IMG/VR virus record: IMGVR_UViG_3300045971_000344
Span: 124,001-188,000 of that record
Direction: 5' to 3' (one strand)
Length of the DNA: 64,000 nt
In this document: piece after piece, positions 2,206 to 31,441 of the stretch
Position numbering within the stretch: position 1 is the first letter of the stretch
Layout of the letters: every line of letters starts with the position of its first letter
Position numbers and translations under genes: made by a program
Notes under the pieces: model-generated
Seen by the model: the letters and a program-made list of their open reading frames with translations, nothing else
Database searches by the model: none
Told to the model about the DNA's origin: nothing

Positions 2206-2841
2206 TTATACAAGCTTTTTGAAATACTGCGCTACAATAGACGCACCAACTCTTGACTTTGTATAAGTATCACTAAGTATTTTCATAAAAATAACCTCGT
2301 CTGGAGAGATCCCTTTCATGCTCTCGCCCCTTTTCTTTCTTCTTTGTTCCTCTATAACCCAAGCCTCTGGGTACTTTTTAGCCGTAAACTTTTCGGCCCT
2401 TATATGTACAGTCTCGTATTTACTTTTTTCGTCCCATCGTGCGGCTGACCCATGAACTATGAACTCTGCTAGAGAAGCAAAGTGTTCATTCGGGTCTTTT
2501 AGGTGCTCTTGTTTGCAAAGATCTAGAAATAGCTTCTTGTCACTTTCACTTACTTTAGTCTTGCCCTTACGATGCCATAAGTGGTGTGCAAGTTCATGTG
2601 TTAATACTTGAACCATTCGTGTACTGTTCTTTACATCAGCCCCTATACATATTGTGTCTTTAGGTTTAAGCCAGTACTCGGATCCCTGTATATTGGAGCA
2701 ACAAATTGAAATAGGTTCAACTATGTTGACCTTTAAGCCTAACTTTGGTTCCAACTTGTTTAAGGCTCTTATTTTAGTTTCTGTTGGACTATAGTAACCA
2801 TCTCTTCTAAATAGACTTTGTATAAAGTTTACCTTGCTCAT
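2206..2841 (-). CDS. Zincin-like metallopeptidase (HExxH)
   Basis: VLTHELAHH with downstream PNEHFA glutamate. Confidence 0.65.
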   Translation of the reverse strand: MSKVNFIQSLFRRDGYYSPTETKIRALNKLEPKLGLKVNIVEPISICCSNIQGSEYWLKPKDTICIGADVKNSTRMVQVLTHELAHHLWHRKGKTKVSESDKKLFLDLCKQEHLKDPNEHFASLAEFIVHGSAARWDEKSKYETVHIRAEKFTAKKYPEAWVIEEQRRKKRGESMKGISPDEVIFMKILSDTYTKSRVGASIVAQYFKKLV

Positions 2842-4932: not shown

Positions 4933-5978
4933 AACGTGCCCTTTTCTTTTAGGTCTACCAAGATTTCTTTCCAAAGACTTCCTGTTAATCCTTTAGACAC
5001 TAGCTTTTTAGACAGTATACTCAATTGTGAAACAGTTAATTGAGATAAAAATTTCTGTTTATTACCCACGAATTTTATACCAAAAGGCTGAGCCGAGGTT
5101 ACACCTAAAATATAGTGTAAAAGCATTTTTAGTGATCTACCTTTTTCGTACCCATCAAGATCAAGACACTCGTCTTCAGTCTTAAGGAGTTCTATTAGGT
5201 CGACTGGTGATTTAACTAGCTTTGGTGGGTCTTGGTGATTCGCTACATTTTTTATTTTAGTAATAACTGTAAAAGCCTTGGCTGTTAGGAATATTGCCTG
5301 AATAGGTTCACCTTCATGAATAAACGCTTTTCCACTTTTATCTGCGAAGCCATCGTACCCACAAAATCTCAATAAAGTATTCCATTTTGTTATTTTCTTT
5401 ATACCGCTGTCTTCACCGGTTAAAGCTTCGGCTAGGCTCTCAACAAAACTCCAAAAAGCAAACGCAATGGATTTATACTCTTTACTATAACGCTCGATTA
5501 AGTAATCATAATCTTCGTCTACGCTATCAAAAACCTTCTTTTCGTTCTTAATAGCTCTTAAGCAACTCAGTTTCTTTTCTTTACCATTCTCCTTTAATTC
5601 AAGGTAAAAAGATTTGAGCTTTTGAGCATCGGCTTTGAAGTTGTCTAATTTATAACTGGTCTTCATATCGTGAATAAAATTAGCACCAGGCCTTACTTTT
5701 ATTACCCAGATGTACGGACGGTCACCAGCATACGGAATTGCGCTTATGGTCCACGATTCTAATTCATTGTCTTGAAAGATTTGTTTTAAAGGATAAGCGT
5801 AGATACCTAGTGGGGTCTCATAGTCTGCCCGTGGATTAATCCCAATTTTATCTTCATAAGTAAAGCTAATATAGACATTTGGATCATTTTTATACTTCTT
5901 AAGTTCTTCATAAGGGTTTACCTTAGGATTGAGCTTTGGATTAGACCTAGAAGAAACTTCTACCCAGTGTATTCGCAT
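4929..5978 (-). CDS. Paralog family A member (divergent ART-like core)
   Basis: VYISFT, GINP, GIYAYPL, CGYDGFADK and EPIQAIFLT motifs. Leader MRIHWVEVSS. Confidence 0.6.
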   Translation of the reverse strand: MRIHWVEVSSRSNPKLNPKVNPYEELKKYKNDPNVYISFTYEDKIGINPRADYETPLGIYAYPLKQIFQDNELESWTISAIPYAGDRPYIWVIKVRPGANFIHDMKTSYKLDNFKADAQKLKSFYLELKENGKEKKLSCLRAIKNEKKVFDSVDEDYDYLIERYSKEYKSIAFAFWSFVESLAEALTGEDSGIKKITKWNTLLRFCGYDGFADKSGKAFIHEGEPIQAIFLTAKAFTVITKIKNVANHQDPPKLVKSPVDLIELLKTEDECLDLDGYEKGRSLKMLLHYILGVTSAQPFGIKFVGNKQKFLSQLTVSQLSILSKKLVSKGLTGSLWKEILVDLKEKGTL

Positions 5979-5986
5979 ATACTCTC

Positions 5987-6793
5987 CTACTTAGTATATT
6001 TTAACAAATGAGTTAACGCTTTATTTGGATCTTTAAAAACCTTCCCATCTTCTGAAATAGAGTAATCAACTATGTTTTTAGGTGTAACAACCTGTGGCTT
6101 ATTTTTAATAAGTATTTCGTGTTCATTACCCCAGCGCATCCCGTTAGCCATAAAGCTATCAAAGTCCTTCTCGTCTAAGTAATGCCTAAACAGGTCTTCA
6201 ATGTTTAAAAGAACATCAGGACCTTTAAGTTTCTCTTTAAGTATTATCGCAGATTCATTACGGTTCCTAGGTTGCCACCCAGCAAACTTTCTTGCTATAT
6301 ACTGTTCAGGACTCCAACTAGCCAGTTTACAATCTCTAAGAGAAAGAGATCCTTTTTCTAATAAAGATTTAAGAACTTCGTCTTTTAAAACTATACCTCT
6401 ATAACAGGTTTTAGGCGGAGCAGATCTAAAGATAGCTGGAGGGTTTATATTCATAATAAGGTCCACTAACTCTGGGTTATCATTTTTACCAAAGTCAGAC
6501 CATAGAATTGCCGCGTGTAAACATTTAACCTCTTCTTTAGTTGGGTCTGGTAGGACCAAAAATCGCCAAAACTGAGCATCAGCACAATAATCGGCCAACT
6601 TTTGGACTTCTTTGTCTGTCTTTACTTTTTGCTTTGATGAAGACAGTCCTAGTCTGTGCCAAGTTCCTGCCTTTGGTCCACGTACATAAAATCCGGTATC
6701 TCCGTAGCCACACGCTGAAAAGAAAAAATTTATTTTAGTCGTGTCTACTGCTTGAGATTTCTTTTTGACCGCGGCAATAACAATCTTTCTCAT
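5987..6793 (-). CDS. R-S-E clade ADP-ribosyltransferase (VIP2/Alt/Mod-like motif order)
   Basis: CYRG...ASWS...IARKFA...NEHEILI. Leader MRKIVIAA. Confidence 0.7.
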   Translation of the reverse strand: MRKIVIAAVKKKSQAVDTTKINFFFSACGYGDTGFYVRGPKAGTWHRLGLSSSKQKVKTDKEVQKLADYCADAQFWRFLVLPDPTKEEVKCLHAAILWSDFGKNDNPELVDLIMNINPPAIFRSAPPKTCYRGIVLKDEVLKSLLEKGSLSLRDCKLASWSPEQYIARKFAGWQPRNRNESAIILKEKLKGPDVLLNIEDLFRHYLDEKDFDSFMANGMRWGNEHEILIKNKPQVVTPKNIVDYSISEDGKVFKDPNKALTHLLKYTK

Positions 6794-6799
6794 AGCTTA

Positions 6800-7462
6800 C
6801 TACTCCACATGAGGTAGATACCGCAACTGCTGGTAACGACCTTTATTTTGTTTTATGAAATTCTCTGCCTTGACCTTACTAATATTGCGCTTAGTAGTAT
6901 ACCAATCTCCACAGTCATAATACTGGACGTCAAAAGTAGATACTACCTTTATGTAAAACATAGCGCTATAGGACCTATGTGTCCGCCCGTCTTTTGTCTT
7001 CCACGTCCAGATTGGATAGGACCCATCATAAAATCCATCATGTCCTAAGAAAACAACCTTCTCATATTTTCGGTAATCAATACTCGACCTAACATAGACC
7101 TTATCCATTCTAGTTAGGTCCTTAGGATTTGTAGCAATATATTCCTTAGTAGGCTTATAAATCAAATTATGGTCAAACTCTATAAACTTTACATTAGGCT
7201 CATCATAGTAAAAATCTTCAGCATCGGTTCCTTCAAGATCTGTTGTTACTGCCTCGCCTTCACACGGACCAACGCCTACTCCTGTCTGTCCATCGCATTT
7301 TACTATATAGAAATTCAGGTCCTCAAGAGATTCTGCAAAGGTATACTCCGCCTTAAGTAATTTCTTTCTCAGGTCTTCTACGATATGCTTATCTACATCT
7401 TGATACCGTACGTGCTTACATACGATCTTTGACTTAGCTTTAGCTATAATGATCTTTCTCAT
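6800..7462 (-). CDS. Hypothetical leader-family protein
   Basis: 220-aa ORF starting MRKIIIAK; no domain recognised. Confidence 0.6.
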   Translation of the reverse strand: MRKIIIAKAKSKIVCKHVRYQDVDKHIVEDLRKKLLKAEYTFAESLEDLNFYIVKCDGQTGVGVGPCEGEAVTTDLEGTDAEDFYYDEPNVKFIEFDHNLIYKPTKEYIATNPKDLTRMDKVYVRSSIDYRKYEKVVFLGHDGFYDGSYPIWTWKTKDGRTHRSYSAMFYIKVVSTFDVQYYDCGDWYTTKRNISKVKAENFIKQNKGRYQQLRYLPHVE

Positions 7463-8055
7463 ATAATAACCCCTATAGCTTGCTTATACCAGTTTTTAAA
7501 TGTAGTATTCTCTAACAGGTCCAAACAACCCAGTGTAAGTAACTGTGGATAAAATTCATGCTTATGAGTTAGTGCATAATGCTCCTCAGAGGACATCTTT
7601 CCTAGTATAGGCGTAAACCACTGCTTAATTTGATAATGGCTAAGTTGTAAAAAATAATTATTAGAGTAAAAACACTTAAGCCATTCTTCATTCTGAGCGA
7701 GCGGTGAGTCTAACAAAGAATGTAGAAGCTTGTACTCTTTTGAGATCTCATTATCTATGTGGTCATTAAATTTACTATGCAAGAACTCATGCACTATAAC
7801 TAATGCAGGTGTCCAAGGTTTATCCTCAAAAACTTCTATGTTTATAATAATTTGACTTCCTGTCCACTCTCCTTGTGAAGCTCCTAGGTCTTTATACTTT
7901 TTTAGGCAAAAGTTCTTTGAAGAAATTATGTTCTTTATTACGGCCGAAAGTTTCGGATCTTTAATCAGGCCAGGTATTTTAGTAAAAGTTTCTTGTGCTA
8001 AATTAAGGTATTTTTCTCTAATTGCTTCAGGTAAATACCCTACTTTTATCTTCAT
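7459..8055 (-). CDS. Zincin-like metallopeptidase (HExxH)
   Basis: VIVHEFLH plus downstream HEFY; ATGA overlaps on both sides. Confidence 0.6.
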   Translation of the reverse strand: MKIKVGYLPEAIREKYLNLAQETFTKIPGLIKDPKLSAVIKNIISSKNFCLKKYKDLGASQGEWTGSQIIINIEVFEDKPWTPALVIVHEFLHSKFNDHIDNEISKEYKLLHSLLDSPLAQNEEWLKCFYSNNYFLQLSHYQIKQWFTPILGKMSSEEHYALTHKHEFYPQLLTLGCLDLLENTTFKNWYKQAIGVII

Positions 8056-10298
8056 AAGCCAAGTTCCTTTACATACTTAGAGAGGTCTTGCTTTGCCTTG
8101 AATTTAGTTCTTTCCTCTACGGCTGGTCCGTGTGATCCATTAATTCTCTCAACTAAATAAGCATGATGTAGTACGTATTGAATATTTGGATTAGTCAATC
8201 CAATTTCTTGTGTCTGAAATTGCTTAGTAAATGTCCAAGAGCAATCTTCATCTGTATCAGTTTCCCCAGATACCTTAGATAGTGCCTTTCCACTTATAAG
8301 AATATCACCATGAAAAATTATGCCAATATCAGCTTTACGTCCAAAAGATTCTCCTACGTACTGCAAACTCTTATCTATATTAGGAGCTATATAAAGAACA
8401 TCTCCCATAGAGCGACCTGTCTTTTTTGTGCCTCGAAGTTTGAATCCTGACAATAATATAGCCCCTGCGGCTGATACTGCGGTCCCATGAAAACCGTCTT
8501 TAATGACTTTAACTTCAGGGTTTTTTAAGTTATTTCGTAAATAGTTTTCTATTTTTTCAGATCGCTTTATTGTCCATAGTTTCTTTACCTTAAAAGATAC
8601 CCCATGAACGTTCGCCATGAAGGCTTCTAACTTCTGTTCCACTTCATGCGTGTCCTCAACAGCTTGTTCTACCTTTACTTGTTCTTCTCTCTTTATAGTA
8701 AAATACTTTTCAAAGATCTCATCTTCGTTACGCTTTCTGACATTCCACTTCTTAACAATACTTAAAGAGATCCTAGGAATCTCTTCATCAGGTAATGCCA
8801 TTTTAAGATGCTTTTCTTTTACTTCCCCAAAGGGAGAATCATAGGTTAATCTAAATTTTGTTGCCAGTAACGCAGACAATACCGTCTGTTTTACAATCAA
8901 AGAATCCTTTAGGCCACTAAAAGTATATTTAAATAAGTCGTCTATATCTAAGGTCTTAAGGAGCTTTATAACAAGAACATCGTCTAGTCGGACAAATTGG
9001 TCTTCGGTTAGGACTAATTTCTTTAAGTACGCTTGTAGTGATGACCCTGACATACTTGTTATAGCCGTAACTGGGTCGGACTGTTCAACAACCTCCGAAC
9101 TATCTTTATCTATTGCCTTATAGATACTTTTTATTCTAGTTATATCTGTAGTTGATAAATAAGGTATCATCCAAGACTTGGGAGAAAATAGCTTGAAATC
9201 AATTTGCTTTTTATACTGTAGCGCGCGCTCTATGGCTTGTTCAAAAGGATTTGACTTTATTCCATAACTTTTTGCATAGTCATCCGCATTTATTCTAAGG
9301 CTAGGTATTTTCTTAATTGACCTAGCGGAGGTTACAAACCAAGACATAGTCTTATCAAACATAAGGGCGCAGAATATCGCAAGGTCTTTATCTCCGCCCA
9401 CATCTGAAGAAAACTCTGAAAAATGTAAGATAGGGTACAAATAAAATTCGGCCTTTAGCGTGCTATCTAAATTGCTTTTTATCCTTTCATCATAAACTCT
9501 ACTTTGACCATATTTTTTCTTACTCTCGTTAAGCCTATTCTCATAATCCTTGGTTTCTAAAAAAGCCTTTCTTTTATCTAGTAAATATTTGTTCATAAAT
9601 TTTATTATTACATCTTTTACTAAAGTCTTATCTAATTTGTTTGCCTTAAGAGCGACCAAGTCTAAGTCTTTTAGACCCATTGTCTTGGACGAACCTACAT
9701 TTAACTTTACTCCCCTGACTTCTATGTCTTCTTTACTGTCCACATGAAATTTTCTAAAAATAGGAACAACAACCTTTGTCTTTAACTTAGCCTTTGGACC
9801 AAGCATTAAGTATGCAGTAACATCGTGCTTAACATCTTCGGGGGCTTTCAAGAAGGCTTTTGTAAGCTCAGGGAAAAACTTAATAAGGTATTCTGAAATG
9901 CTATAGATACAAAAAATTAAGAAATTAGTGTTCTCATTTATAACCTTAGGATTTACACCCAGGTCTTTTAGACTTTGCTTTACAAGCACGTGGTTATCTT
10001 TAAACGTGTTCTCTATTAAAGAAACTCCGTCACCCTTCTTAAAACTCTTTTTACCTATGATAGAAAGTAATCGCGACCCTGCAAACTTGGTTTCATTCTT
10101 TCGAACCATGGGATGCCCGTTTAGAATAGGCACAAATTTCTTTCCGTCAAGATCAATATATAAGCTCTTTAGATAGCTATGAACCAAAACAACAGGAATA
10201 GAGTGTCCAATCAATCTTTCATTTTTCCAATACTCAATACCTTTTATTTGGTCAAATTGATTGATCTTAGCAGCCAGTGTGTATTTTCTATTAAGCAT
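8052..10298 (-). CDS. Large protein with C-terminal PARP-like (H-Y-E) catalytic domain
   Basis: GFHGT...AILLSGFKL...GRSMGDVLYIAPNIDKSLQY...QEIGL resembles the PARP signature HG[ST]..I...G....G.M.G.G.Y.A....KS..Y...E. Confidence 0.7.
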   Translation of the reverse strand: MLNRKYTLAAKINQFDQIKGIEYWKNERLIGHSIPVVLVHSYLKSLYIDLDGKKFVPILNGHPMVRKNETKFAGSRLLSIIGKKSFKKGDGVSLIENTFKDNHVLVKQSLKDLGVNPKVINENTNFLIFCIYSISEYLIKFFPELTKAFLKAPEDVKHDVTAYLMLGPKAKLKTKVVVPIFRKFHVDSKEDIEVRGVKLNVGSSKTMGLKDLDLVALKANKLDKTLVKDVIIKFMNKYLLDKRKAFLETKDYENRLNESKKKYGQSRVYDERIKSNLDSTLKAEFYLYPILHFSEFSSDVGGDKDLAIFCALMFDKTMSWFVTSARSIKKIPSLRINADDYAKSYGIKSNPFEQAIERALQYKKQIDFKLFSPKSWMIPYLSTTDITRIKSIYKAIDKDSSEVVEQSDPVTAITSMSGSSLQAYLKKLVLTEDQFVRLDDVLVIKLLKTLDIDDLFKYTFSGLKDSLIVKQTVLSALLATKFRLTYDSPFGEVKEKHLKMALPDEEIPRISLSIVKKWNVRKRNEDEIFEKYFTIKREEQVKVEQAVEDTHEVEQKLEAFMANVHGVSFKVKKLWTIKRSEKIENYLRNNLKNPEVKVIKDGFHGTAVSAAGAILLSGFKLRGTKKTGRSMGDVLYIAPNIDKSLQYVGESFGRKADIGIIFHGDILISGKALSKVSGETDTDEDCSWTFTKQFQTQEIGLTNPNIQYVLHHAYLVERINGSHGPAVEERTKFKAKQDLSKYVKELGL

Positions 10299-10316: not shown

Positions 10317-10888
10317 CTATCTAAGTTCTTTTTTAGGATCCAATTTGTCTACAGCTATAACCTTTAGTATTTTTGGATCATAGACAATGCAGTGCATATC
10401 TCCCGAATAATCTTCAATAACTAAGGAATCATATCCTAAAGATAAAATAAGCTTTAACCATTCTTTTGCTTCAGTGTTCTTAAATAGATTTTCCCAGACG
10501 TAGCTAAATGCCCAAGCAAGTTCACCCGACCCCATAAGATTTTCTGTGTAAGAAACTCTGGTATGATTAATCGACTTTAGCCTACGGTCTAAATTTGGAA
10601 CTGCATCTAGTAGGAGATCTACAACTTTTTTGGAAACATCTCCAGAGATTTGTTTCTTAGAAGAAATCTTAACAGAGATAACTATCCCCACCTTATTGGA
10701 ATAGTGATTAACCGCATAGGACTTTGCACCATCTAAAGCATCAGTAAAATAAAGTCCAGGTCCATGTTCCATCCAATTTTTTCATCTAGAGAGTAACTAA
10801 TATCAAATTTATCTGAGGTAGTCATTCTACCCTGATACCATATTTTTGTTGCGGAGCTACTAATACTCGAAAGTACAACCTTTCTCAT
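10317..10888 (-). pseudogene. ART-like gene (polyvalent-protein type) split by a 1-nt frameshift in an A6 run
   Basis: ATG at 10888 after SD GAGG gives MRKVVLSS...IWYQGR...KFDISYSLDEK. One extra A at 10777-10782 joins it to NWMEHGPGLYFT...AKSYA...LGYDSLVI...IVYDP (track ORF 10317..10772). Confidence 0.7.
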
Positions 10889-13231: not shown

Positions 13232-14236
13232 TCAACAATTAAGTTCAGCTTCTTTAAAGACCTTTTCAAGTTTGTTCGCAAAGTCAACATACTTCTTTCT
13301 ATACACTTTAGCACTAGGATTGGCCTTAGTGGTCTTAACGTCCTTTACATCTGGTGCTATTGCTTTCTGTAACTTGGTTATAAACGCCAAAGCTAAGTCA
13401 TAAAATTCTTTATACTCAGCATTACTCAGCTCTTTTTCTATTTTTGATCTTTGGGCATCAATTTTCTTTTGTGCTTTCTTAACAAATACATAGTAATAGT
13501 CGCGTATAAATTCCCCGTTATCAGCCGTTTCTTCTTCACCTAGATAGTTACGCTCGTCTATCTCAAATTTCAGATCATACTTATGGAGCGCGCAAACCAT
13601 ATCCTTTAGGTTATACCGTGCTACCTTTTGTATCTGTTCTTCAGATAGGGGCTCATCATGAGTATTCGCAGTAATAACGTCTGTCTTTTTACTAAAAGCT
13701 CCATCATTACCTGTAGCGGACTTTATTTGTTTTGGATCAAAGACATGAAAATTCAAGGCGTTCATATCAAATTTATTTTGGGTTATTATACCATCAAAAC
13801 CCAATGCCTTTAGTTCTTTATGGAAGGGCTCAATATAACCCCAATGCCCTTCTCTAATTCCGCTTAAAGTGTCTTCGTTATTGAACTTACCTAGTTTGGA
13901 CGATAATTTTTGGACGTGCTTTTCGATTCTAAAATCAAAAGGTTTTTGTATACTTAGATAGACTGGCAGTACGCTCCCGTTTGCCCGGTCAGCAAAGCCA
14001 TTGGCTAAGGAAGGCGTAGATGTAAAGGAAAACAATCCTCGGTTACGCGTGTCCCTAAACGTTCCGAAGTCCGCGGCTGTACCATGATACATAACAAGCG
14101 GGGACCCATGTTTGTCAACTGCTTTGGAGCGACCAAACCAAATCCAGAAGTTATCCACGCCTTTAGGGTCAGCGTTAATAGCGTTACCTTTGGAATTCAT
14201 GTTCGTCTTAAAACTCGCGATAACTACATGTCTCAT
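13232..14236 (-). CDS. ADP-ribosyltransferase-like protein of the polyvalent-protein type plus helical C-terminal domain
   Basis: FWIWFGRSKAVD..G.PLVMYHGT..F..F...LFSFTS...A..FA...PVYLSIQKPFD...GFDGII...VFDPKQIKSATGNDGAFS. Leader MRHVVIAS. Confidence 0.75.
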   Translation of the reverse strand: MRHVVIASFKTNMNSKGNAINADPKGVDNFWIWFGRSKAVDKHGSPLVMYHGTAADFGTFRDTRNRGLFSFTSTPSLANGFADRANGSVLPVYLSIQKPFDFRIEKHVQKLSSKLGKFNNEDTLSGIREGHWGYIEPFHKELKALGFDGIITQNKFDMNALNFHVFDPKQIKSATGNDGAFSKKTDVITANTHDEPLSEEQIQKVARYNLKDMVCALHKYDLKFEIDERNYLGEEETADNGEFIRDYYYVFVKKAQKKIDAQRSKIEKELSNAEYKEFYDLALAFITKLQKAIAPDVKDVKTTKANPSAKVYRKKYVDFANKLEKVFKEAELNC

Positions 14237-16656
14237 AGTAATCCCTTAGATTTAAGGAGCGCCAGTACCTCATTTGGACCAATGACTTTTACGCCCAATG
14301 ACTGAGCCTTTACCATTTTAGATGAGCCACTTCCAGGGTCTTTTGCTACCAAATAGGTCAGACCTGCCTTTACTGCTGACCAGACTTGACCACCGTTTGC
14401 CTCAATGACTGCCTCTGCATCATGCTGGCGAACACCCGTCCAGACAAAAGACACTCCGTCTAACTTAGAGCTCTTTCGTTCTTTCTTTTGGACGGCTTTT
14501 ATGTGGACCCTTCCGGCGTTGCGCTTCAAGAAGGCTTTGAAGGGCTTTATACCTTGTGCAAACTGTTTACCTGTATCAAGAGAGAACCCAGAGATCTGAG
14601 AAATTTGTTGCGCGACCTCACCTACAGTGAAACCCGCCCAATCAAACATTTCTTCTCCACGTACTTCATAAATCTTTCTCAAGCGGGTACCCGCAATTAT
14701 CTCTCCAAAGAAAGGCGTGGCTGAAGCCAGCGTAGGTAACTCAATACCATTCAAGGCCGTTATTATTCCGTTATAAATTTTCTCTGCATTACGCTTCTGG
14801 ATTCCATCAATAGACATCAACTCTGGAATTGAGGTATTAATCAGCTTATCAATAGTGTCAATACCTGCATGATAGAATCGCTCAATTAAGCCCCTACCTA
14901 AGTAATCTACCCCAATTTTAGAAAAGAAGCTTGCCATTTGCTTGATCTTTACGGTTTCGTCTTCACTTGCATTGACCAATACCAAATCAACTTCGGTTTC
15001 ATTCCATGCGTATTCTCCAAATACTTTCTTATCAGGCATCTGGGCCTTATTGGCCTTCACTAAGGTCTTCAAGATGTGAGGAATTACATCACCGCTCCTT
15101 GTAAGTAAAACTTTCGCGCCTGGTCCAAGCTTGTTGTCGTAAACAAATGCCGCGTTAAAGGCAGTGGCGAACGTTACGGTTACACCACTTAACTTTACTG
15201 GACTGATCTTTATTCGAGGTTTTAACTTACCATGCTTAGATACTGCCCAGACAACCTCTTGGACATGTGCTTCAACAGCTTCGGTTTCACCGGTCTTAAA
15301 GGCCTTGGCGTAATCGGGTTTAATCGTATTACTAGCGTTACCCATTGCAACTCTGATCTTACAGCTATTTGCTTCGATTACCGCTCCATCTAGTTCAAAA
15401 CCCCCAACCTTCTTTCTTTCGTTTATATAAGAAGTAAGATGATCTTCATTCACCTCAGTGGATTTTAAAACAGAATAGTGAACAACGTGGAGTCCACTTT
15501 CTTTTATAAGTTCAAGTTGCTCTTTCTTATCCAAACGGTCCTCATGACTCATTATGGAATAGGCTATTACATTTATCTTACTCAAGACCTTTACGTTGGG
15601 CTCATTACGGTTTATCATTCCCGCCAAAAGGTTTCTACCGTTTGCGTATTCTTTATCCCCGTAGGCCTTAACGGACTCAAAGTCAGCCTGGGACAGAATT
15701 CCTTCGGCCCTAAAGGTATATTCACCCTTGAACTTCGCACCTATCTTCTTTGGAACTGTAGGAACGTTCTTTATGTGTCTCGTAACGTCTTGACCAATTG
15801 ATCCGTCACCCCTTGTGGTCGCCCTAACAAAGGTCCCGTCTACATACTTAAGGGACAGGCTTAATCCATCTAATTTATCGGACAGTACGTAGAACTTATC
15901 TTTTGTTTCCTTAACAAACTTTGCGGTTGCTACTCCATCGGGCTTTATCTTATTTAACGACCCCATGTCATAATCTAGCTGTACTTTTGACCTTATGTTT
16001 TTTGCAACGGGCGCACCAACCGCGTCAAGAATTGCCGCTCGTTTAGAGTCCAGGGTCTTCAAAAATTCTACAAGGTCATCATATTGGTTATCTGTTATCT
16101 CACTTTCTTTAGAACCAGTATGGTACGCATCTTTAGATGCAAGAGCTAACCCGAATAACCAGGCTACTATATCTTCTTTACCCGCGGTAGCATAGTGTGC
16201 AAAGTCATGGATAAGTTTAGGTGTAGTTAGAACCAGTGCATTTGGTTGCGCCTTTACATCTGCGGACTGGAGTCTAGGTAAATTCCAAAGGAGTGTTCTA
16301 ACCTCAGACATATTTAGAGATTTAGCTGTAAATGTTCTAAAATTTTGAGGGTGTAAATTAGCTGACTTCATTGTACGTTTATCAATGTCGCGCTTAACCA
16401 AAAGCTTTTCAAAGTCAACAGGCGCCAAATATATAGCATACTCGTCTTGAATCCAATATGCGATGATCTGAGGATTCAGGCTAAGAACTACCAGGTAAAA
16501 CTTTTTGACCTTGCCATTAGTCGTAACTACTCCTCGAAGCCTACTTCCTATTTTAAGTTCAAAGCCTGCTACCCTGATATAGTCTTTTTGGTGTTCCTTC
16601 CAGTATTTATCAGCATTTAGGAACAAATCTTTTTTATAATGCTTAAGTAACTGCAT
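14233..16656 (-). CDS. ligA: NAD+-dependent DNA ligase with N-terminal extension and C-terminal BRCT
   Basis: Domain Ia YH...ITDNQYD, MGSLNK, adenylation motif SDKLDGLS, TRGDG..GQDVT, LDGAVI, AFK, OB fold RSGDVIPHI, HhH repeats, BRCT (FVWTG...GG...YLVA...SSKMVKA..LGVKVI). Confidence 0.95.
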   Translation of the reverse strand: MQLLKHYKKDLFLNADKYWKEHQKDYIRVAGFELKIGSRLRGVVTTNGKVKKFYLVVLSLNPQIIAYWIQDEYAIYLAPVDFEKLLVKRDIDKRTMKSANLHPQNFRTFTAKSLNMSEVRTLLWNLPRLQSADVKAQPNALVLTTPKLIHDFAHYATAGKEDIVAWLFGLALASKDAYHTGSKESEITDNQYDDLVEFLKTLDSKRAAILDAVGAPVAKNIRSKVQLDYDMGSLNKIKPDGVATAKFVKETKDKFYVLSDKLDGLSLSLKYVDGTFVRATTRGDGSIGQDVTRHIKNVPTVPKKIGAKFKGEYTFRAEGILSQADFESVKAYGDKEYANGRNLLAGMINRNEPNVKVLSKINVIAYSIMSHEDRLDKKEQLELIKESGLHVVHYSVLKSTEVNEDHLTSYINERKKVGGFELDGAVIEANSCKIRVAMGNASNTIKPDYAKAFKTGETEAVEAHVQEVVWAVSKHGKLKPRIKISPVKLSGVTVTFATAFNAAFVYDNKLGPGAKVLLTRSGDVIPHILKTLVKANKAQMPDKKVFGEYAWNETEVDLVLVNASEDETVKIKQMASFFSKIGVDYLGRGLIERFYHAGIDTIDKLINTSIPELMSIDGIQKRNAEKIYNGIITALNGIELPTLASATPFFGEIIAGTRLRKIYEVRGEEMFDWAGFTVGEVAQQISQISGFSLDTGKQFAQGIKPFKAFLKRNAGRVHIKAVQKKERKSSKLDGVSFVWTGVRQHDAEAVIEANGGQVWSAVKAGLTYLVAKDPGSGSSKMVKAQSLGVKVIGPNEVLALLKSKGLL

Positions 16657-18638: not shown

Positions 18639-19133
18639 TTAATCTACATCAGAGTGGTCTTCATCAAGAGCTGAAAATTCTTCATCTTTTAGAATAATCT
18701 TTTTACCAATTAATGCTTTCTTTAAGGCAACTAAAAGGTCCTTAGAGACCTTTAGATCATACCCAATAGTAATATGCGGAATATATTCCGCGTAATCCCA
18801 CTGAAGATCATGGGCTTCCATTAGGAGCCTATGTCTCTTTTCCAGGGCAGGACTTTTAAGTATAAGGACATGACAGTCATCATGGGTAGTCCAATGCTCT
18901 ATATCTTTTATCTGGGCAATGTAGTCAGTATTTTCTTCCTTTATGCGGTCCACGTTACCTACTCGACTATAAAGAAGAGTACTATGATATTTATTGGGAT
19001 CAATTATTTTCTTAGTACCAGAACCATCTAAGTACGCACAGATAATATTTGAAATTATCTGTGCGTCTCTTTTAGATGGAGTAACCATTGCGTACACGCC
19101 TTGCGGTTTTTGGTCTTTCATAGTATAACTCAC
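18639..19133 (-). CDS. acb1: 2H phosphoesterase, T4 gp57B/Acb1-like anti-CBASS nuclease
   Basis: GVYA..., YHSTLLYSR and YIPHITIGY (two HxT motifs), LILKSP.L..RH, and an acidic C-terminal lid, all resembling T4 57B. Confidence 0.8.
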   Translation of the reverse strand: MSYTMKDQKPQGVYAMVTPSKRDAQIISNIICAYLDGSGTKKIIDPNKYHSTLLYSRVGNVDRIKEENTDYIAQIKDIEHWTTHDDCHVLILKSPALEKRHRLLMEAHDLQWDYAEYIPHITIGYDLKVSKDLLVALKKALIGKKIILKDEEFSALDEDHSDVD

Positions 19134-19139
19134 CTAAAT

Positions 19140-19796
19140 TTAATTTACTTCAATAAAGGCTTCTGTTCTAAATGAAGCCAAGGAACTTACTGTTCTGTTC
19201 TTTGCCCAGACACCACCAACAGGTCCACCTTTCTTTATTCCACCTGTTTGTTCACGTTGCTGAGAAACGTCATCTACGCCTGTAGTGTTTGCACCAACAG
19301 TATTAAACTTTACATTAGAAGTCTGGACAGACATCAATTCAGCATGACCATCCCAATCATACTTGTCATTACCTGCTCGGTCTAACTTTTTCTTATGTGA
19401 CCATATTGCTAACATAGCAGGTTTTAACTTAATTATTCCATACTCTACTTTTTTTGCATCATGAACGGTAAAAGTATATTTGTCCTTCTTTGCTGTCTTT
19501 AGAAAAGTGGAGCATTTACCAATCTTTGGTACAGGACAGCGTTTACCATTTGCCTCGTAAGTTTTCCCTATTATAAATATACAAAATGAAAGGCAGTATG
19601 AAAGTCCAACAGGAAGTCCCAAGTAAGCTAGGTACCCATCAATTTCAGGACTCTTATTTCCATTTAGCGGATGAAGTTCTCTTACGTATAACTGTGATTC
19701 TGCTCTCTTCATAATCTCAGCGGGATACTGGATAGCTAAAGAATAACTTGTATTAACCAATAGAGATAAAATAACAAGCGTACAAATAAATTTCAT
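19140..19796 (-). CDS. CHAP-family endolysin with N-terminal signal peptide
   Basis: Hydrophobic leader, then AESQLYVRE...NKSPEIDGYL...SYCLSFC...GHAELM...TVGANT (catalytic Cys/His, G.NT). Confidence 0.7.
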   Translation of the reverse strand: MKFICTLVILSLLVNTSYSLAIQYPAEIMKRAESQLYVRELHPLNGNKSPEIDGYLAYLGLPVGLSYCLSFCIFIIGKTYEANGKRCPVPKIGKCSTFLKTAKKDKYTFTVHDAKKVEYGIIKLKPAMLAIWSHKKKLDRAGNDKYDWDGHAELMSVQTSNVKFNTVGANTTGVDDVSQQREQTGGIKKGGPVGGVWAKNRTVSSLASFRTEAFIEVN

Positions 19797-20917
19797 ATAT
19801 CCTCCAAGAATTTCTTTCTCCTTATAGTTTCGGCTCTTTTTAAAGCGGTAGCCTTATTTTGTTCAGGAGTTCTTTTACTCCATGATTCAGAGTGTTTCTG
19901 TTTTCTTTCTTTCTCTTTTTTCTTTGACCTTTTGCTATGAGAAAGAGACATTTTTATACTAGTATGTTCTTTTTCTTCAAGGGTTCTTTTTGAGTGTGCC
20001 TCGGATATTTTCTTTCCAAAAGCTTTTAAGTCTTTACCGTATCTTTCTTCTAATGTTTTTGCTCTTTTACTGTATATCTTCTCTTTTTCTTCTTTTGATA
20101 AATTTTTTCTTACTTTAGATTTATTCTTAAACTGTTTTTTCTTCTCTTTCTCAGATTGATTATTTCTAGTATCTCGTTTTTTCTGTGCAATAGCTTCTTT
20201 TTCTTCTTTTGTTTTATTTTTCCAAGTTTCAGATTGTCTATTTCTAATATCTAAATCAGTCTCTTCCGAAAGATTCTTTCTGGTTTCTTTTTGTTTTTTA
20301 ATTCTTTTATTCTTAACACGTTTAGGAGTATTCTTTAATGTTTCTTTGTGTTTTTTATTAATTGTTTCTTTCTTTTTAGCTGGTCTAATTAAGTGAACCA
20401 GTTTTGTGGACTCTGACTTTTTCTTTTTAGTTTTTTCTTTTTCTTCTTTTGTTTTATTTTCACGAGAGTCTAACATCTTTTTAGAAATTTTAGCTTTTTC
20501 TTTTTTAGTTTTACAATTCCAAGTATTTAATATTTTCTTTCGTACTGATTTACTAGGATTTAATACTCCGTCACCACCATCTGTCAAGTTAGTAAGAGGA
20601 CCTAATTTAAGATCTCTTCTACCTAGTTTAGCTATTAAGACTTTCTCTAATTCCTTTATTTCCTTTACCGAATTCTTTTTACTTTTTACTACCCGTATAC
20701 AATCTTCATAACCTTCCTTTTTTATCTTTGCAATTACATTTGCTTTAAATGGATTAAACTTACAGGTTTCATCATGACCATTCATTCTACCATATTTCTT
20801 TTTAGTATCTGTTCCTATTCCAACATAAAAAGGTTCATGACTAAATTTCCAATGACCATAATAAAATGGTCCTGGCTTACGTGGATCAAGTAAAGCATAA
20901 GCATAATACTTTTTCAT
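19793..20917 (-). mobile_element. Free-standing GIY-YIG family homing endonuclease with long Lys-rich repetitive DNA-binding tail
   Basis: YYAYALLDPR...PFYVGIG...R..GH...ELEKVLI..LGRRDL..GPLTNLTDGGDG, followed by repeated [ST]xEEK helices. Confidence 0.8.
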
Positions 20918-22004: not shown

Positions 22005-23909
22005 TTAGTGTCCTATTGCGAGCCAAAATCCATTTATAGCTGATCCTGACCATGAACTGGGATTCCAAGTAAAATTGGCCTGTGTTAGTAACCCAACAGA
22101 TGCCCAGTTAACATTTATTGGGGTTGCGTCTTGATTCATGGTTATCATTACGTTCATGCAGTTAATAGGAAAAGATAAGTTAAACGGAACAGTGTGCTTA
22201 ACGTTAGACATAATAAACGTTCCCCACTGTAAGATTATACCATTTCCTAGGTCTAACCAGCCGGAGGTTGAGCCATCTCCAACTAAGCTTCCAGGTATAT
22301 TTGATTTTAATACCCCCGTAGCGTCAATAGCGAGTCTTGAGGTTGTACCTATTGCTACAAGCCCAGGAACTGTTGGAGTAGCGATAGGTGTAGCAAACTC
22401 AGATAGCTTTTTACCTCCAATCATTTCGGCATTTAGCCCAGTTTGGAGCAGTCCGTTATTTACAGGTATATCTCCGTAAATATCTACGCTATTAACGGTT
22501 CCTATAACCTTATCTGAAGTGTGATGACCGTCAACCATATCAGCATTAATTGTACTAGTATGACCAAGGTCAAGATTTATATTACTAAAGTTATTTACAC
22601 GATCCCAGGATGCCCCGTTCCAAACAATCCAGTCCCCTATAAGATACGCGGTTCCATCTATGGTCCCTCTTACAGAGATTACCCAATAATGTCCTTGTCG
22701 AAGGTTTTCCCAATAGTAAGTAACTGGGTATTGAGGAGGAGCGGTACCGTTTGACGCGTCCCAGGTTCCCCTATATAGTAAATAAGGAAGCTCGGTATTA
22801 TCTACTTTATCCCAAATACCACTTCCCGAGTATACAAGCCAATCCCCCACCTGGTAACAAATACCTTGAATAATTCCTGAGGTCCCTATTACCCAATACT
22901 GACCTCTCAAAGGATTAGGTGGATACCCTTGAGTTGCATCCCAACGAGATTGATAGACGAGTCCGGAGGTATCTTCGAGTCGGACTGCTGTCCAGATCAT
23001 TACCCTTGACGTTGTATCCAGGTTTGTTACTTGAATAGGAATACTTGCGGCAGCGGCTGTATCACAGGCAGAACTTGTGGTAGGACTAGTCGATGAGCTT
23101 ACGGTTACACTAAAATCTTCATAGAGAGTCTCAAATGCCAAGGTCTGTGGGTTATATCCTACTGCTCTACACTGAGTACGCCCGGTACCTTGATATACAT
23201 AGACAAAAGCAAAGTCAATCAACTCAGGTGGAATGTTTGTTACGGGCGCGCCTATGAGCTGAAAGCTATTATTGGCCAGAGGTTTTACGAGCCCATCATA
23301 ATAAAGACTACCATTTAGTAAGCCCCAGGACATTGGACCCGTATCAGTAACAGCGTATCGAGTAAGCATAGAAGGCCGAATCCGACCACCACTAGAAAAT
23401 CCGTGATTTACTATGTAAGCATTATCGCCCGTACGTTCTGGGTTAGGAAGATCTCCATAGTAATTAACTCTAGGCAAGCTCATTGTCCATGTTAAGGTCA
23501 GATCCACGGCTGCACTTATGTAAGGGCTCAGACATATAGCATGGGTTTTAAACCTTACATTTGGTTCCTTAATAAACGGGTTAGGATAGCAACCTAAGGC
23601 TAACAAGACCTCAGTTGATCCGTCCATAAAGTACAAACCTATTTCTCCAATTGCTACCGCGGATAGTCCTAAGTGTTCAGGGCATATACATAAAAAGTCC
23701 AGATGCTCACCGGTAATTGCATCCACATTTGAGATCAAGCCTGACCATAGAGTATTACCGTGTAACCCAGTATCCCCAGCGGTTGGCTTATAACCTGTAC
23801 CGTCCCCAAATTTCACATTAGTAACAGAGAATTTATACCCCTTAGAATGTGCATCTACTATTTTATCGTACCCGATCTTTGTTAGTTGTAATGACGGCAT
23901 GCTAAACAC
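22005..23909 (-). CDS. Tail fibre protein (baseplate-anchor N-terminus, lectin-like C-terminal tip)
   Basis: LTKIG...VKFGDG...IGEIGLY...LLA anchor; two G.W...G.....GDW repeats; GWLDLGNGIILQWG...FP..C...FWLAIGH tip. Confidence 0.8.
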   Translation of the reverse strand: MFSMPSLQLTKIGYDKIVDAHSKGYKFSVTNVKFGDGTGYKPTAGDTGLHGNTLWSGLISNVDAITGEHLDFLCICPEHLGLSAVAIGEIGLYFMDGSTEVLLALGCYPNPFIKEPNVRFKTHAICLSPYISAAVDLTLTWTMSLPRVNYYGDLPNPERTGDNAYIVNHGFSSGGRIRPSMLTRYAVTDTGPMSWGLLNGSLYYDGLVKPLANNSFQLIGAPVTNIPPELIDFAFVYVYQGTGRTQCRAVGYNPQTLAFETLYEDFSVTVSSSTSPTTSSACDTAAAASIPIQVTNLDTTSRVMIWTAVRLEDTSGLVYQSRWDATQGYPPNPLRGQYWVIGTSGIIQGICYQVGDWLVYSGSGIWDKVDNTELPYLLYRGTWDASNGTAPPQYPVTYYWENLRQGHYWVISVRGTIDGTAYLIGDWIVWNGASWDRVNNFSNINLDLGHTSTINADMVDGHHTSDKVIGTVNSVDIYGDIPVNNGLLQTGLNAEMIGGKKLSEFATPIATPTVPGLVAIGTTSRLAIDATGVLKSNIPGSLVGDGSTSGWLDLGNGIILQWGTFIMSNVKHTVPFNLSFPINCMNVMITMNQDATPINVNWASVGLLTQANFTWNPSSWSGSAINGFWLAIGH

Positions 23910-23935
23910 CTCTATTTAGTTATAGAATTAACAGG

Positions 23936-24298
23936 TTACTCAGGTTCAACCATGTCCTTTGGAGCGTTTGTTCTTATATTGTTTATTTTTGCCTTCATTT
24001 CCAAGCCTTTAGGGTCCTGAGGGTCGTTAGCTAATCTCCAAAGAGCTTCTAGCTGGTCCGTAATAGGAGGATATTCCAACACTCTTCGTCTTATATATAC
24101 AGGAGTAGAATTTATAGGCGTAAAGGTGTAAACAACTTTATTGTCCACAACTGAAGCAAAACTTGAGTGTTTACTAAAATACTCATATTCCTCTGGATTT
24201 AAAATAATTTCGTCAGGACCTAACTTAGGTAAGATTTGACTTAGTTCTAAGATCTCAGTCTCTATTCGTCTATCTAAAAATTTTACTAAAAATAACAT
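23936..24298 (-). CDS. Probable tail fibre chaperone
   Basis: RRRVLEYPPITDQLEALW...KINNIR..APK motif; lies between two fibre genes. Confidence 0.6.
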   Translation of the reverse strand: MLFLVKFLDRRIETEILELSQILPKLGPDEIILNPEEYEYFSKHSSFASVVDNKVVYTFTPINSTPVYIRRRVLEYPPITDQLEALWRLANDPQDPKGLEMKAKINNIRTNAPKDMVEPE

Positions 24299-24316
24299 AC
24301 TTTCTCCTATTTTGGA

Positions 24317-26806
24317 TTAATACTCTATTAAGACCGCGCCATCTGCACCATTAGGATTATTTTGAGTAGTATCTCCAGAGTCAATACAGTTACCTGCATT
24401 AGTAGCACCTGTTATCGTTCCACCAGCTACACCTGGTATATAATACCCACCATCTGTACCAACAGTAAGAATAGTATCTGTAGTTACCCTACTATATATT
24501 GAGGAATTAAGATCGTAACTCCCTCCAAAAGGTCCTGTAAGTGTATTATTTAAAACAGGACATAATCCACCAAAGGCAGCTACATCTTCATTAAAACTAG
24601 AGACTTGTCCGGATGTTCCTCTTATAGTACTATTAGGCTGACCTCCGGTTCCACCTGCACCAACAATTACTTTATAGGTTTTACCCGGGATAACTAGATA
24701 TTTAAGTTTTCCTATATAGCCCCCACCTCCACCACCATAGCTATGCCCACGTCCTTGGTTTGATCCATCAATAGTATCATACCAATAAACTTGTCCACCA
24801 CCACCGATTAAAGAGACTATGCAGTAATTTGGGCCATCAATAGGTGCTGTCCAGTAGTAAGTTCCAGCTATTTTATATAAGGTAGATAGTCCTGCTAGTG
24901 CTTGAGTATTAATGTACCAAGTAAACTTAACCCAGCCGTCCTTTAAAGTAAGTCCAGAAAGAGCAGTTAGCCCATCAGGTACATTTACTGCGCTCGGGGT
25001 GTCTAAAATAGCTTTTGTTCCGACCTTACTTGGTCCATCCATATAAGGGTCGTATCCTCGTTCATGTCCACCTACAGTTACACCAGCTTTTCCTAATAAA
25101 GCAAGTCCATTTGTTCCGTAGTGTATTAAACCTACACCTGGTATTCCTGGGTTTGCCGAGCTAGGTAGTTCACCTGAAGTACATTCTAATAGTTCTGTAA
25201 GTTTATAACTAACTTTTGTAGACTCCCCAGGTAAGCCGTAACCAACGTTATTCTTTCCTGCATAACCACCTTGTGTACCACCTTTTCCAACTATCACAGT
25301 CAATTGTTGAAAAAACTCGTAATTAATGGCGTTCAACCCTGTAAAATTAAGGTTCCATATTCCTCCTCCAGGACCGCCAGGTATTGCATAAGTACCATAG
25401 TCATTATCATGTAACCCTCCAGAGCCTCCACCTGCACCTAAAGAATCTATTAATATGGGTTTACTATGATCTATATTTTCAGGTATGGTCCAATTATATG
25501 TACCATTGGTAGACCAAATCATAGTTTCAGTTGTACCTTGATTTAGGAGTCTCAAAATTTCATACCAATGATGATTATCTAGCATATCTGAATTTTCAGA
25601 GTATAAAGCTAAATCGGCTACATCTGAATGGCCTGAGTTTAAAACCTTTGTATTTACAACATCAATCATTATTTCAGCTAAGTGCTTATCATCAAGTAAA
25701 TCCGAGTTTAGATTCGTATTTATTATCCCATTACTAATTGGAATATGGTCAGTATCATTACCGGATTGTCTACCATTTAGCTTTACCGCATCACCTGCAC
25801 TTAGCTTATACCAATTGGTCTGGCCTTGATAAACCATCCAATCGCCTGGATAGTAAAGTGTACCATTAATGGTTGCAGTACCAGTTGATATAAAGTAATC
25901 ACCTTTAACCACAGATAAAACTGGATAAGCATTTGTTATACTTGGATTGTACGTCCCTCTGCTATTCATACCTTCGGAGATTATCGCCGCCTCTGCCCAG
26001 ACGACCACTCTTGAAGTACTGTCCAAAGGAATAGTAAATTCCGAGACAATGTTAAACTCAAGAGTAATTTGATTGAACCAGGTTGCTTTAATCTGTCCCT
26101 CACCTGCTCCTACATAAACATAAACAAAAGCGAAAGCTAGATAGGCAGGGTCCATAGCCCTTATAGGGGCATCAGGCAGATTATACGTAGTAAGTCCTGT
26201 TGACTCAATGGTGCCCTTATAATAGTGAAATCCGTTTACCAAACCCCAGACCATTAATTGTTCTTGTTCTAGAATATAACGTACAACCAAAGTGGGCTTT
26301 ATCTCTGTACCGGCCACATAGTACAAACCTTTGTTTATAATTACTGCGTTATCCCCGGTTGTCTGCGGACTGGGTAGTAATTCATAAGTATCTAGACGAG
26401 GAAGACTCATGCTCCAATTAAGAGTAGTCTGGAGTCCGTTTACAAGCGAACCTGTCTGGCACAAAGCATGCATCTTGAAGCGAATGTCCACGCTCTTTAC
26501 AATTGGATAGGGTAAGCAAGCAATAGCATACAAATGGTCATCGTTTGTATAGAGAGCTATTTCTCCAATTTCAACTGAAGAGGAATCTACATACTGAGGA
26601 TAAACGCAAAGAAAATCCGCTATGGCCTCACTTAAAATATCTAAGTTTGCGATTGGACCACCCCAAAGTATAGAACCACTTAAACCTGTTGTTGCTTGAG
26701 TAGGAACGTAATTTGTTCCAGTTCCAAATTTAACTGTAGTTACGTTTAACTTAGTTCCACTGTCAATCGCATCTTTAGCGTATTGACTTAGTATCATTAG
26801 CGACAT
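24317..26806 (-). CDS. Second tail fibre protein with glycine-rich C-terminal domains
   Basis: First ~370 aa are paralogous to 22005..23909; two GTY.WT.P...GGGG...VIVG.GG.GG modules. Confidence 0.8.
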   Translation of the reverse strand: MSLMILSQYAKDAIDSGTKLNVTTVKFGTGTNYVPTQATTGLSGSILWGGPIANLDILSEAIADFLCVYPQYVDSSSVEIGEIALYTNDDHLYAIACLPYPIVKSVDIRFKMHALCQTGSLVNGLQTTLNWSMSLPRLDTYELLPSPQTTGDNAVIINKGLYYVAGTEIKPTLVVRYILEQEQLMVWGLVNGFHYYKGTIESTGLTTYNLPDAPIRAMDPAYLAFAFVYVYVGAGEGQIKATWFNQITLEFNIVSEFTIPLDSTSRVVVWAEAAIISEGMNSRGTYNPSITNAYPVLSVVKGDYFISTGTATINGTLYYPGDWMVYQGQTNWYKLSAGDAVKLNGRQSGNDTDHIPISNGIINTNLNSDLLDDKHLAEIMIDVVNTKVLNSGHSDVADLALYSENSDMLDNHHWYEILRLLNQGTTETMIWSTNGTYNWTIPENIDHSKPILIDSLGAGGGSGGLHDNDYGTYAIPGGPGGGIWNLNFTGLNAINYEFFQQLTVIVGKGGTQGGYAGKNNVGYGLPGESTKVSYKLTELLECTSGELPSSANPGIPGVGLIHYGTNGLALLGKAGVTVGGHERGYDPYMDGPSKVGTKAILDTPSAVNVPDGLTALSGLTLKDGWVKFTWYINTQALAGLSTLYKIAGTYYWTAPIDGPNYCIVSLIGGGGQVYWYDTIDGSNQGRGHSYGGGGGGYIGKLKYLVIPGKTYKVIVGAGGTGGQPNSTIRGTSGQVSSFNEDVAAFGGLCPVLNNTLTGPFGGSYDLNSSIYSRVTTDTILTVGTDGGYYIPGVAGGTITGATNAGNCIDSGDTTQNNPNGADGAVLIEY

Positions 26807-26819
26807 TTGTCTTCCTTTC

Positions 26820-31024: not shown

Positions 31025-31029
31025 TTTTA

Positions 31030-31419
31030 TTATCCTCTGGATAGACTTAAAAAGCTTGTTATTATTTTTCCATTAAAACCATTTATTAATACCAAACGTA
31101 CATCAAAACATTGTGCCAAAAGATTGGCAGTTATAGTTGTGTTCTCAAAGTCAAAGGTGCATCTATTTGCTTGTTTAGCGATATCAGCCAATGCGAGCTT
31201 TATCTGAAATGCGGTAATTGCGTCCAAAGGATCTTGAAGAAGTCTCTGTAAAGAAGAGCCTATATTAGGACGAAACGGACGTTCACCTATATTATCCGCG
31301 TCCTTTAAAGTATTTAGAATATTAAGAAATCCTGCCAATACTGCATCTTCATCGGTTATAATAAAAGTTGTATCTTCTAAACTTTCATAGTATAAATTTA
31401 TATCGGTATAAATATTCAT
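31030..31419 (-). CDS. Baseplate gp25-like sheath initiator
   Basis: YTDINL...D.DAV...NILNT...GERPFRPNIGSSL..LLQDP. Confidence 0.9.
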   Translation of the reverse strand: MNIYTDINLYYESLEDTTFIITDEDAVLAGFLNILNTLKDADNIGERPFRPNIGSSLQRLLQDPLDAITAFQIKLALADIAKQANRCTFDFENTTITANLLAQCFDVRLVLINGFNGKIITSFLSLSRG

Positions 31420-31441
31420 CGCTACTACCCCTGTTGTTTAT

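Follow-up and report, generated by a model that had tools for sequence, protein, structure and literature searches.

A predicted PARP-clade ADP-ribosyltransferase with an unrecognized N-terminal region in an uncultured jumbo myovirus

The PARP-like gene and its catalytic domain

The 64,000-nucleotide stretch of DNA analyzed here (the window) comprises bases 124001 to 188000 of IMG/VR virus record IMGVR_UViG_3300045971_000344 and carries on its minus strand a gene for a PARP-like ADP-ribosyltransferase (ART), designated P0001. The full record is 294,944 bp long, has a CheckV completeness of 100%, and contains roughly 400 open reading frames (ORFs) at 39% G+C and about 95% coding density. The tail sheath protein shares at most 31% identity with its counterparts in jumbo myoviruses such as Pseudomonas phage PaBG, and a megablast search of phage records returned no match; the source is therefore regarded as an uncultured jumbo myovirus without a close sequenced relative. 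The stretch holding the PARP gene was found with zero differences on a 116-kb contig of two pond-metagenome DNA runs, which may themselves be the source of the assembly and so do not count as independent support. It was present in DNA runs only, with no RNA run containing it.

P0001 is encoded by a single ORF, which begins at an ATG with a ribosome-binding site (AAGGAG) upstream and ends in a TGA that overlaps the ATG of the next gene. Plus-strand ORFs lying within it are small (62 to 82 aa) and have nothing in their favor. A first-pass annotation made from the letters alone had proposed a phage PARP-like enzyme at this position, and all of the motifs it quoted occur in this one 748-aa ORF at window positions 8052 to 10298: FHGT (H604), SGFKL, GRSMGDVLYIAPNIDKSLQY (Y636 and Y647), and QTQEIGL (E698), a combination far beyond chance. 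The gene and its parts are laid out as follows.

8052-10298, minus strand: P0001, 748-aa PARP-like ADP-ribosyltransferase, isoelectric point (pI) 9.4, single ORF
8133-8657, minus strand: catalytic ART domain, PARP fold, residues 548-722
8487-8489, minus strand: codon of His604 (FHGT), triad histidine, aligned to PARP1/PARP3 WHG
8391-8393, minus strand: codon of Tyr636 (GDVLY), triad tyrosine, aligned to PARP1 GKGIY
8358-8360, minus strand: codon of Tyr647, second tyrosine, aligned to PARP1 SANY
8205-8207, minus strand: codon of Glu698 (QTQEIGL), triad glutamate, aligned via relatives and hhalign
8658-9182, minus strand: helical middle region, residues 373-547, conserved across the family, no known domain
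9183-10298, minus strand: variable basic helical N-terminal region, residues 1-372, net charge +23, no known domain

The comparison with the Pfam PARP model (PF00644) that had been suggested for the C terminus gave a match to residues 548 to 654 that cleared the gathering cut-off (E = 5.2e-9, 36.3 bits versus 26.7). A word-index homolog search returned the query itself and one weak match only. HMMER, run exhaustively over 1.8 billion representatives, gave 80 relatives at E ≤ 1e-3, with 31 at ≤ 1e-10, and 78 of the 80 make up the family alignment (78 rows) and profile. PF00644 was matched by 16 of 22 close relatives and by 68 of the 78 wider relatives. When the family profile was compared with the PDB, the catalytic domain of PARP1 was matched at E = 2.6e-17, followed by PARP2 (3.9e-11), PARP3 (9.2e-11), and the tankyrases (about 1e-7). 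An AlphaFold2 model computed from the 78-row alignment had a mean predicted local distance difference test (pLDDT) score of 81.2 and a predicted template modeling (pTM) score of 0.64, and the C terminus of P0001 has a PARP-type ART fold. This model was used in place of a single-sequence model that proved unusable (pLDDT 31.8).

Residues of the catalytic triad could be placed individually. In HMMER alignments to PARP1 and PARP3, His604 falls on the histidine of the WHG motif, Tyr636 on the GKGIY tyrosine, and Tyr647 on the SANY tyrosine. Among the 78 rows, the His604 column held histidine in 75 and was gapped in 3; every row had Tyr636, and 75 had Tyr647. Glu698, located on the following strand, occupies a column with glutamate in 77 rows and a gap in 1. 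This residue aligned with the NGEYVV glutamate of relative P0039 (position 506), which lies inside that protein's own Pfam PARP match (349 to 520, spanning nearly the whole model), and hhalign paired it with the SPEW glutamate of the PARP proteins of phages phiAS5 and Xanthomonas X1. A fold alignment spanning all three positions implies that, in the predicted structure, the triad would converge on one NAD+ pocket.

The C terminus that had been called PARP-like from its motifs thus has the fold of a PARP catalytic domain and an intact H-Y-E triad, and the assignment of P0001 as a predicted active ADP-ribosyltransferase of the PARP (H-Y-E) clade is well supported by sequence comparison. Given the fold and the invariant His604, Tyr636, and Glu698, P0001 is therefore predicted to bind NAD+, release nicotinamide, and transfer ADP-ribose. 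Whether the product is mono- or poly-ADP-ribose is something the sequence cannot tell.

The N-terminal region and the family of relatives

Upstream of the catalytic domain lie about 545 residues that the first-pass annotation had described as unrecognized and had put forward as a possible sensor or targeting module. The lack of recognizable domains was borne out by searches of Pfam, PDB profiles, the ESM Atlas, and the phage's own genome for paralogs, all of which came back empty. The model is all-helical N-terminally, with good confidence over most of residues 100 to 180, 210 to 330, and 370 to 545. Two parts can be distinguished by conservation: residues 373 to 547, all-helical with pLDDT mostly 70 to 96, are conserved family-wide (for example, W376-M377 and G491), and residues 1 to 372 are conserved among the closest relatives only. 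With Pfam at E up to 1, PARP was the sole above-cut-off domain of P0001, and the N-terminal region gave no match. A profile of residues 360 to 547 (A3) produced only chance-level matches to the PDB and Pfam, none of them a PARP. An ESM-Atlas feature search with the N-terminal region gave no usable match (structure matches had template modeling [TM] scores below 0.3, from a poor Atlas model), and no N-terminal paralog was found in the phage's own genome.

In comparison with PARP1, PARP2, PARP3, and the tankyrases, which share PF00644, P0001 lacks a detectable WGR domain, zinc finger, or PARP_reg helical domain, and its upstream residues are unrelated to any detectable PARP accessory domain. The Pfam search of P0001 at E up to 1 contained no match to any of the three. 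A search of the whole genome for WGR was also negative, while control genomes matched, and the genome search for PARP_reg was likewise empty, its control giving no match either. Foldseek alignments to fragments with a PARP helical domain and an ART domain (HD+ART) extended over 370 to 410 columns at a TM score of about 0.4, and almost no aligned residues were gained upstream of the ART domain in VIA. Residues 373 to 547 could conceivably be a diverged PARP helical domain. No PARG or Macro partner was found.

P0001 also resembles phage proteins of the PART/PARP family noted by Iyer et al. (PMC7824862, PMC9503650), in which a long helical protein of a large myovirus likewise has a PARP-type domain at its C terminus, such as phiAS5 ORF0265 (1183 aa), the Xanthomonas X1 "ADP-ribosyltransferase" (1395 aa), and PHROG 18612. 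Proteins of the phiAS5/X1 type were at the top of a Foldseek search against viral models, and hhalign aligned their ART domains with that of P0001, including the catalytic glutamate, at E = 2.5e-14 (phiAS5) and 7.6e-13 (X1). However, the N-terminal regions do not align. Likewise, homology to PHROG 18612, a group of larger PARP-domain proteins from Xanthomonas phages and from T4-like phages of Aeromonas and Pseudomonas, is confined to residues 555 to 656 of P0001 and positions 931 to 1038 of the 1214-position profile rather than extending over the full length. The genomes also differ, in that in phiAS5 (L009, NC_014636, region 5249 to 9843) the PARP gene is directly preceded by an annotated ADP-ribosylglycohydrolase gene and has NadV 5 kb away, and neither is found in the present genome.

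About 22 full-length relatives of 720 to 930 aa are 18 to 35% identical to P0001, and all are metagenomic phage proteins. All 22 family members are basic (pI 9.2 to 10.5). Two of the relatives (P0003 and P0004) end in a BRCT domain that is 34% identical to the BRCT domain of this phage's DNA ligase, and several have low-complexity tails rich in Lys, Ala, Pro, and Arg. An Agenet/Tudor-like C-terminal extension of P0008 and P0009 fell below the cut-off (E = 0.006) and was not accepted.

PARP-type catalytic domains had been described at first pass as uncommon in phage, a view that did not hold: Iyer et al. 2022 (PMC9503650) count PART/PARP as one of the most frequent ART families of viruses, and within ESM-Atlas clusters of PARP proteins the viral share is 60 to 88%. 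"Viral versions of PARPs/PARTs" have been reported in a few jumbo phages (Iyer et al., PMC7824862), and a survey of gut jumbo phages placed PARP and NAD+ ligase in one "self-repair" scheme, purely in silico (PMC11662467). Both phage PARP-type enzymes and the idea of PARP/ligase repair are already published in-silico predictions. A literature search returned genome surveys only, with no experimental work on a phage PARP and none with a known target or product. Within this catalogued, uncharacterized class, the P0001 subfamily is distinct and has a new architecture with an unrecognized module of about 545 aa.

Gene neighborhoods in this phage and its relatives

P0001 lies on the strand of a minus-strand run of about 99 kb that contains the head and tail genes, near the distal end of the run. 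All genes from the tail sheath (61466 to 63358) through the baseplate and fibers to the start of the window are on the minus strand, and the major head protein is encoded just outside the window on the same strand. Beyond the fiber genes the order is Acb1, ligase, ART-PolyVal, small unknown genes, a 151-aa ORF, P0001, and about ten unknown genes. The identified neighbors are listed below; CBASS denotes the cyclic-oligonucleotide-based antiphage signaling system.

18639-19133, minus strand: Acb1 anti-CBASS phosphodiesterase, 164 aa (PF23474, E = 1.3e-22, 80.5 bits, cut-off 27)
14233-16656, minus strand: NAD+-dependent DNA ligase, 807 aa, with adenylation, OB, HhH, and BRCT domains
13232-14236, minus strand: second ADP-ribosyltransferase, ART-PolyVal, 334 aa (PF18760, E = 1.9e-25)
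10317-10772, minus strand: 151-aa ORF, 18 nt upstream of the PARP start, possibly a very divergent ART

The ligase confirms the BRCT-bearing NAD+ ligase that had been placed about 4 kb from the PARP-like gene. It also has about 175 extra N-terminal residues with no assigned domain, the PHROG profile match starting at residue 175 and the Pfam match at residue 248. Since the start codon of the ART-PolyVal gene overlaps the ligase stop codon (ATGA), these two genes are probably translationally coupled; the C-terminal 150 aa or so of the ART-PolyVal protein have no assigned domain. The 151-aa ORF matched ART-PolyVal below the cut-off (18.9 bits, E = 3.4e-4) as well as phrog_25279 (function unknown), and BLAST against the neighboring ART-PolyVal protein gave no similarity. 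If it is a real ART, it would be the third within 6 kb.

Genes that would reverse ADP-ribosylation or restore NAD+ were sought across the genome. No Macro, ARH, or NADAR gene was found, nor was PARG, for which the control genomes also gave no match, and there was no NadV salvage gene. Two Nudix genes are present away from the PARP locus. Two topoisomerase IB genes (C1:239810-240424 and C1:79906-80547, 96.9 and 43.4 bits) are outside the window and far from P0001.

The sequence TTGTACTTT, followed about 10 nt later by TAGTAG, has only two intergenic copies, at 10870 to 10880 and 2190 to 2200 on the minus strand (genome positions 134878 and 126197). One is upstream of the 151-aa/PARP operon and the other upstream of a 164-aa gene at 1667 to 2161. 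It could be a phage promoter, but two occurrences are not enough to decide.

Ligase proximity was counted over eight loci for which roughly 10 kb of sequence was available to either side. A ligase was found within 10 kb of the PARP-like gene in four of the eight; it is 4 kb away in this phage and within 10 kb in L016, L019, and L022. In L019, a BRCT-bearing NAD+ ligase gene and the PARP-like gene share 4 nt, with topoisomerase IB and Acb1 downstream. On the 266-kb contig of L022, the order is Acb1, ligase, topoisomerase IB, three genes, and the PARP-like gene, and further on are a second Acb1 and three genes sized like those for an ATPase, a virion protein, and a head protein. L016 has Acb1, ligase, topoisomerase IB, a DUF7487 protein, the PARP-like gene, and fiber-like genes, and in L021 the PARP-like gene is followed by two genes and then Acb1. 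Acb1 thus recurs near the PARP-like gene in L016, L019, L021, and L022 (two copies in the last), and topoisomerase IB is within 10 kb in L013, L016, L019, and L022.

In some other relatives the gene is near structural modules. In L013 and L014/L015, it is directly upstream, or a few genes upstream, of genes for the ATPase, virion structural protein, and major head protein (followed in L014 by sheath and tube), and Tad6, GNAT, SprT, and GIY-YIG genes are upstream. In L007, an ART-PolyVal homolog and a Nudix fusion are encoded 2 kb upstream of a 938-aa PARP-like gene. The linkage outlasts divergence to about 20% identity and turnover of intervening genes, and because the relatives' phages share many genes, the contexts are not phylogenetically independent.

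Further features of the window concern other genes. Tail-fiber-like proteins encoded at 22005 to 33961 (minus strand) contain a gp53-like C terminus, a glycine-rich domain, a CBM_5_12 chitin-binding module, and a chitobiase C-terminal domain, which hints at a polysaccharide receptor. A 374-aa protein (19793 to 20917, minus strand), whose N terminus matches a LEM-3-type GIY-YIG gene of L014 at 42% identity across 139 aa and which has a paralog at genome positions 84 to 1067, may be the product of a homing-endonuclease-like gene. Downstream of P0001, a 211-aa protein (2206 to 2841, minus strand) has a weak Peptidase_M78/IrrE-like match that is below the cut-off (E = 0.004).

Candidate roles for P0001

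By analogy with phage T4 Alt, we tentatively favor, at somewhat less than even confidence, a reading of P0001 as an active PARP-clade ART that is made late and directed at the host, possibly as a virion-carried effector. It would be an effector of the phage and not a housekeeping enzyme. P0001 would be made with the late/structural gene block, and its very basic, helical N-terminal region of about 545 residues would provide DNA association and/or targeting. Its substrates would be host macromolecules, whose modification would help the phage seize the cell or dampen its defenses and would be irreversible because the phage has no eraser. P0001 might also be carried in the virion and enter with the DNA, as Alt does.

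This host-directed role is favored because the gene is in or next to structural modules, and because its neighbors are of counter-defense or injected-effector types (Acb1 and ART-PolyVal here, Acb1 and Tad6 in relatives). It is also favored by the lack of a Macro, ARH, or NADAR eraser in the genome, and by a basic character typical of DNA-associated internal proteins. In addition, ARTs encoded near morphogenesis genes of myoviruses have been predicted to be packaged in the head (PMC9503650), and the T4 gene order of baseplate genes, then alt, alt.1, and ligase offers a precedent. ART-PolyVal is likewise a phage ART predicted to be host-directed, encoded 3 kb upstream here and 2 kb upstream in L007; it belongs to a different ART family, however, and P0001 itself has no PF18760 match.

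The resemblance to T4 Alt is one of size and layout. Alt (682 aa, versus 748 for P0001) also has a long N-terminal region, with its ART domain at 374 to 614, and its gene lies beside the phage DNA ligase (ligase, alt.1, alt) and next to baseplate genes. According to the T4 record, the capsid contains Alt, which passes into the host together with the infecting DNA. However, Alt belongs to a different ART clade (R-S-E, PF03496), to which P0001 has no match, and the two show no sequence similarity (hhalign probability 0.3%).

Several observations weigh against a late-made, host-directed P0001. Virion packaging is a possibility suggested by gene position beside structural genes and by the basic pI, and there is no direct sign of it: P0001 has no MuF or portal fusion, and MuF was not seen in any of the 22 relatives. 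The ligase and topoisomerase IB neighbors are DNA-metabolism genes rather than virion proteins, and the BRCT fusions and basic tails of relatives are just as compatible with a DNA-bound role. Conserved gene order in related phages may be a product of descent and not of function. Promoter and terminator scans were at the level of shuffled sequence and gave no expression timing.

The chief alternative, which we consider unlikely, is a PARP linked to DNA breaks, in which the basic N terminus would bind nicks or ends of phage DNA and so activate the ART domain. P0001 would then modify itself, DNA ends, or partner proteins and, alongside the NAD+ ligase and topoisomerase IB, take part in replication, repair, or the protection of ends. 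The ligase 4 kb away here and within 10 kb in L016, L019 (by overlap), and L022 fits such a role, as do topoisomerase IB within 10 kb in L013 and the same three loci, the BRCT C termini of P0003 and P0004, and the Lys/Ala/Pro/Arg-rich tails of several relatives. PARP1, PARP2, and PARP3 are the best sequence matches among solved structures, and in Xanthomonas phage X1 the PARP-domain protein is encoded between genes for a single-stranded DNA-binding protein (SSB) and an exonuclease. However, the WGR, zinc-finger, and PARP_reg domains were not matched in P0001, the genome has neither WGR nor a detected PARG, Macro, or ARH gene for recycling, and the phage's own two topoisomerase IB genes are far from the PARP gene. 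The contexts that suggest the link are, moreover, not phylogenetically independent. In T4 the ligase and alt genes are also adjacent with no known functional link, and therefore ligase adjacency need not imply a repair function.

The loose PARP/ligase pairing raised by the first-pass annotation accordingly survives in part. As a recurring arrangement it has a ligase within 10 kb at four of eight loci, a 4-nt overlap at one, and BRCT domains on two relatives. As a repair partnership it is weakened by the T4 precedent and by the failure to find WGR, PARP_reg, or an eraser, and the idea was already in print (PMC11662467). A more elaborate version, which we regard as improbable, is that a clade of freshwater jumbo phages has a eukaryote-like strand-break module in which the PARP-like enzyme joins an NAD+ ligase with BRCT and a topoisomerase IB. 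Nicks or genome ends would be sensed by a new class of basic helical domain that binds DNA, ADP-ribose marks on them or on proteins bound there would coordinate sealing or protect incoming phage DNA, and this break sensor would have evolved independently of WGR domains and zinc fingers.

Less likely than either the host-directed or the break-linked role is that P0001 modifies nucleic acids as such, and we give this only a small chance. Phosphorylated DNA ends, host mRNA or tRNA, or phage genome ends would be the targets, for host shut-off or for shielding from nucleases. Relatives in the H-Y-E clade are reported to ADP-ribosylate the ends of DNA or RNA. All members of the family are strongly basic, appendages that look DNA-binding occur on some of them, and no protein-targeting domain is recognizable in P0001, but the sequence gives nothing to tell a nucleic-acid acceptor from a protein one. 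Least likely, and in our view very improbable, is that P0001 hydrolyzes NAD+ or is catalytically idle, serving in a structural or scaffold capacity while keeping the PARP fold: some ART-fold proteins do act as NADases (PMC9503650), but the triad, GxGxY, and K-S-x-x-Y are invariant over sequences only about 20% identical, which argues for retained catalysis, and wholesale NAD+ destruction would be self-harming for a phage whose own ligase needs NAD+ and whose genome has no NadV.

Whichever role applies, the P0001 subfamily is a practical entry point to phage PARPs, since it is compact (about 750 aa) and has an intact active site, a recurring neighborhood, and two testable alternatives. If P0001 is packaged, the T4 Alt paradigm would extend to the PARP clade. 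If it is instead activated by DNA, a new break-sensing domain would come to light, with a bearing on the origin of eukaryotic PARP signaling.

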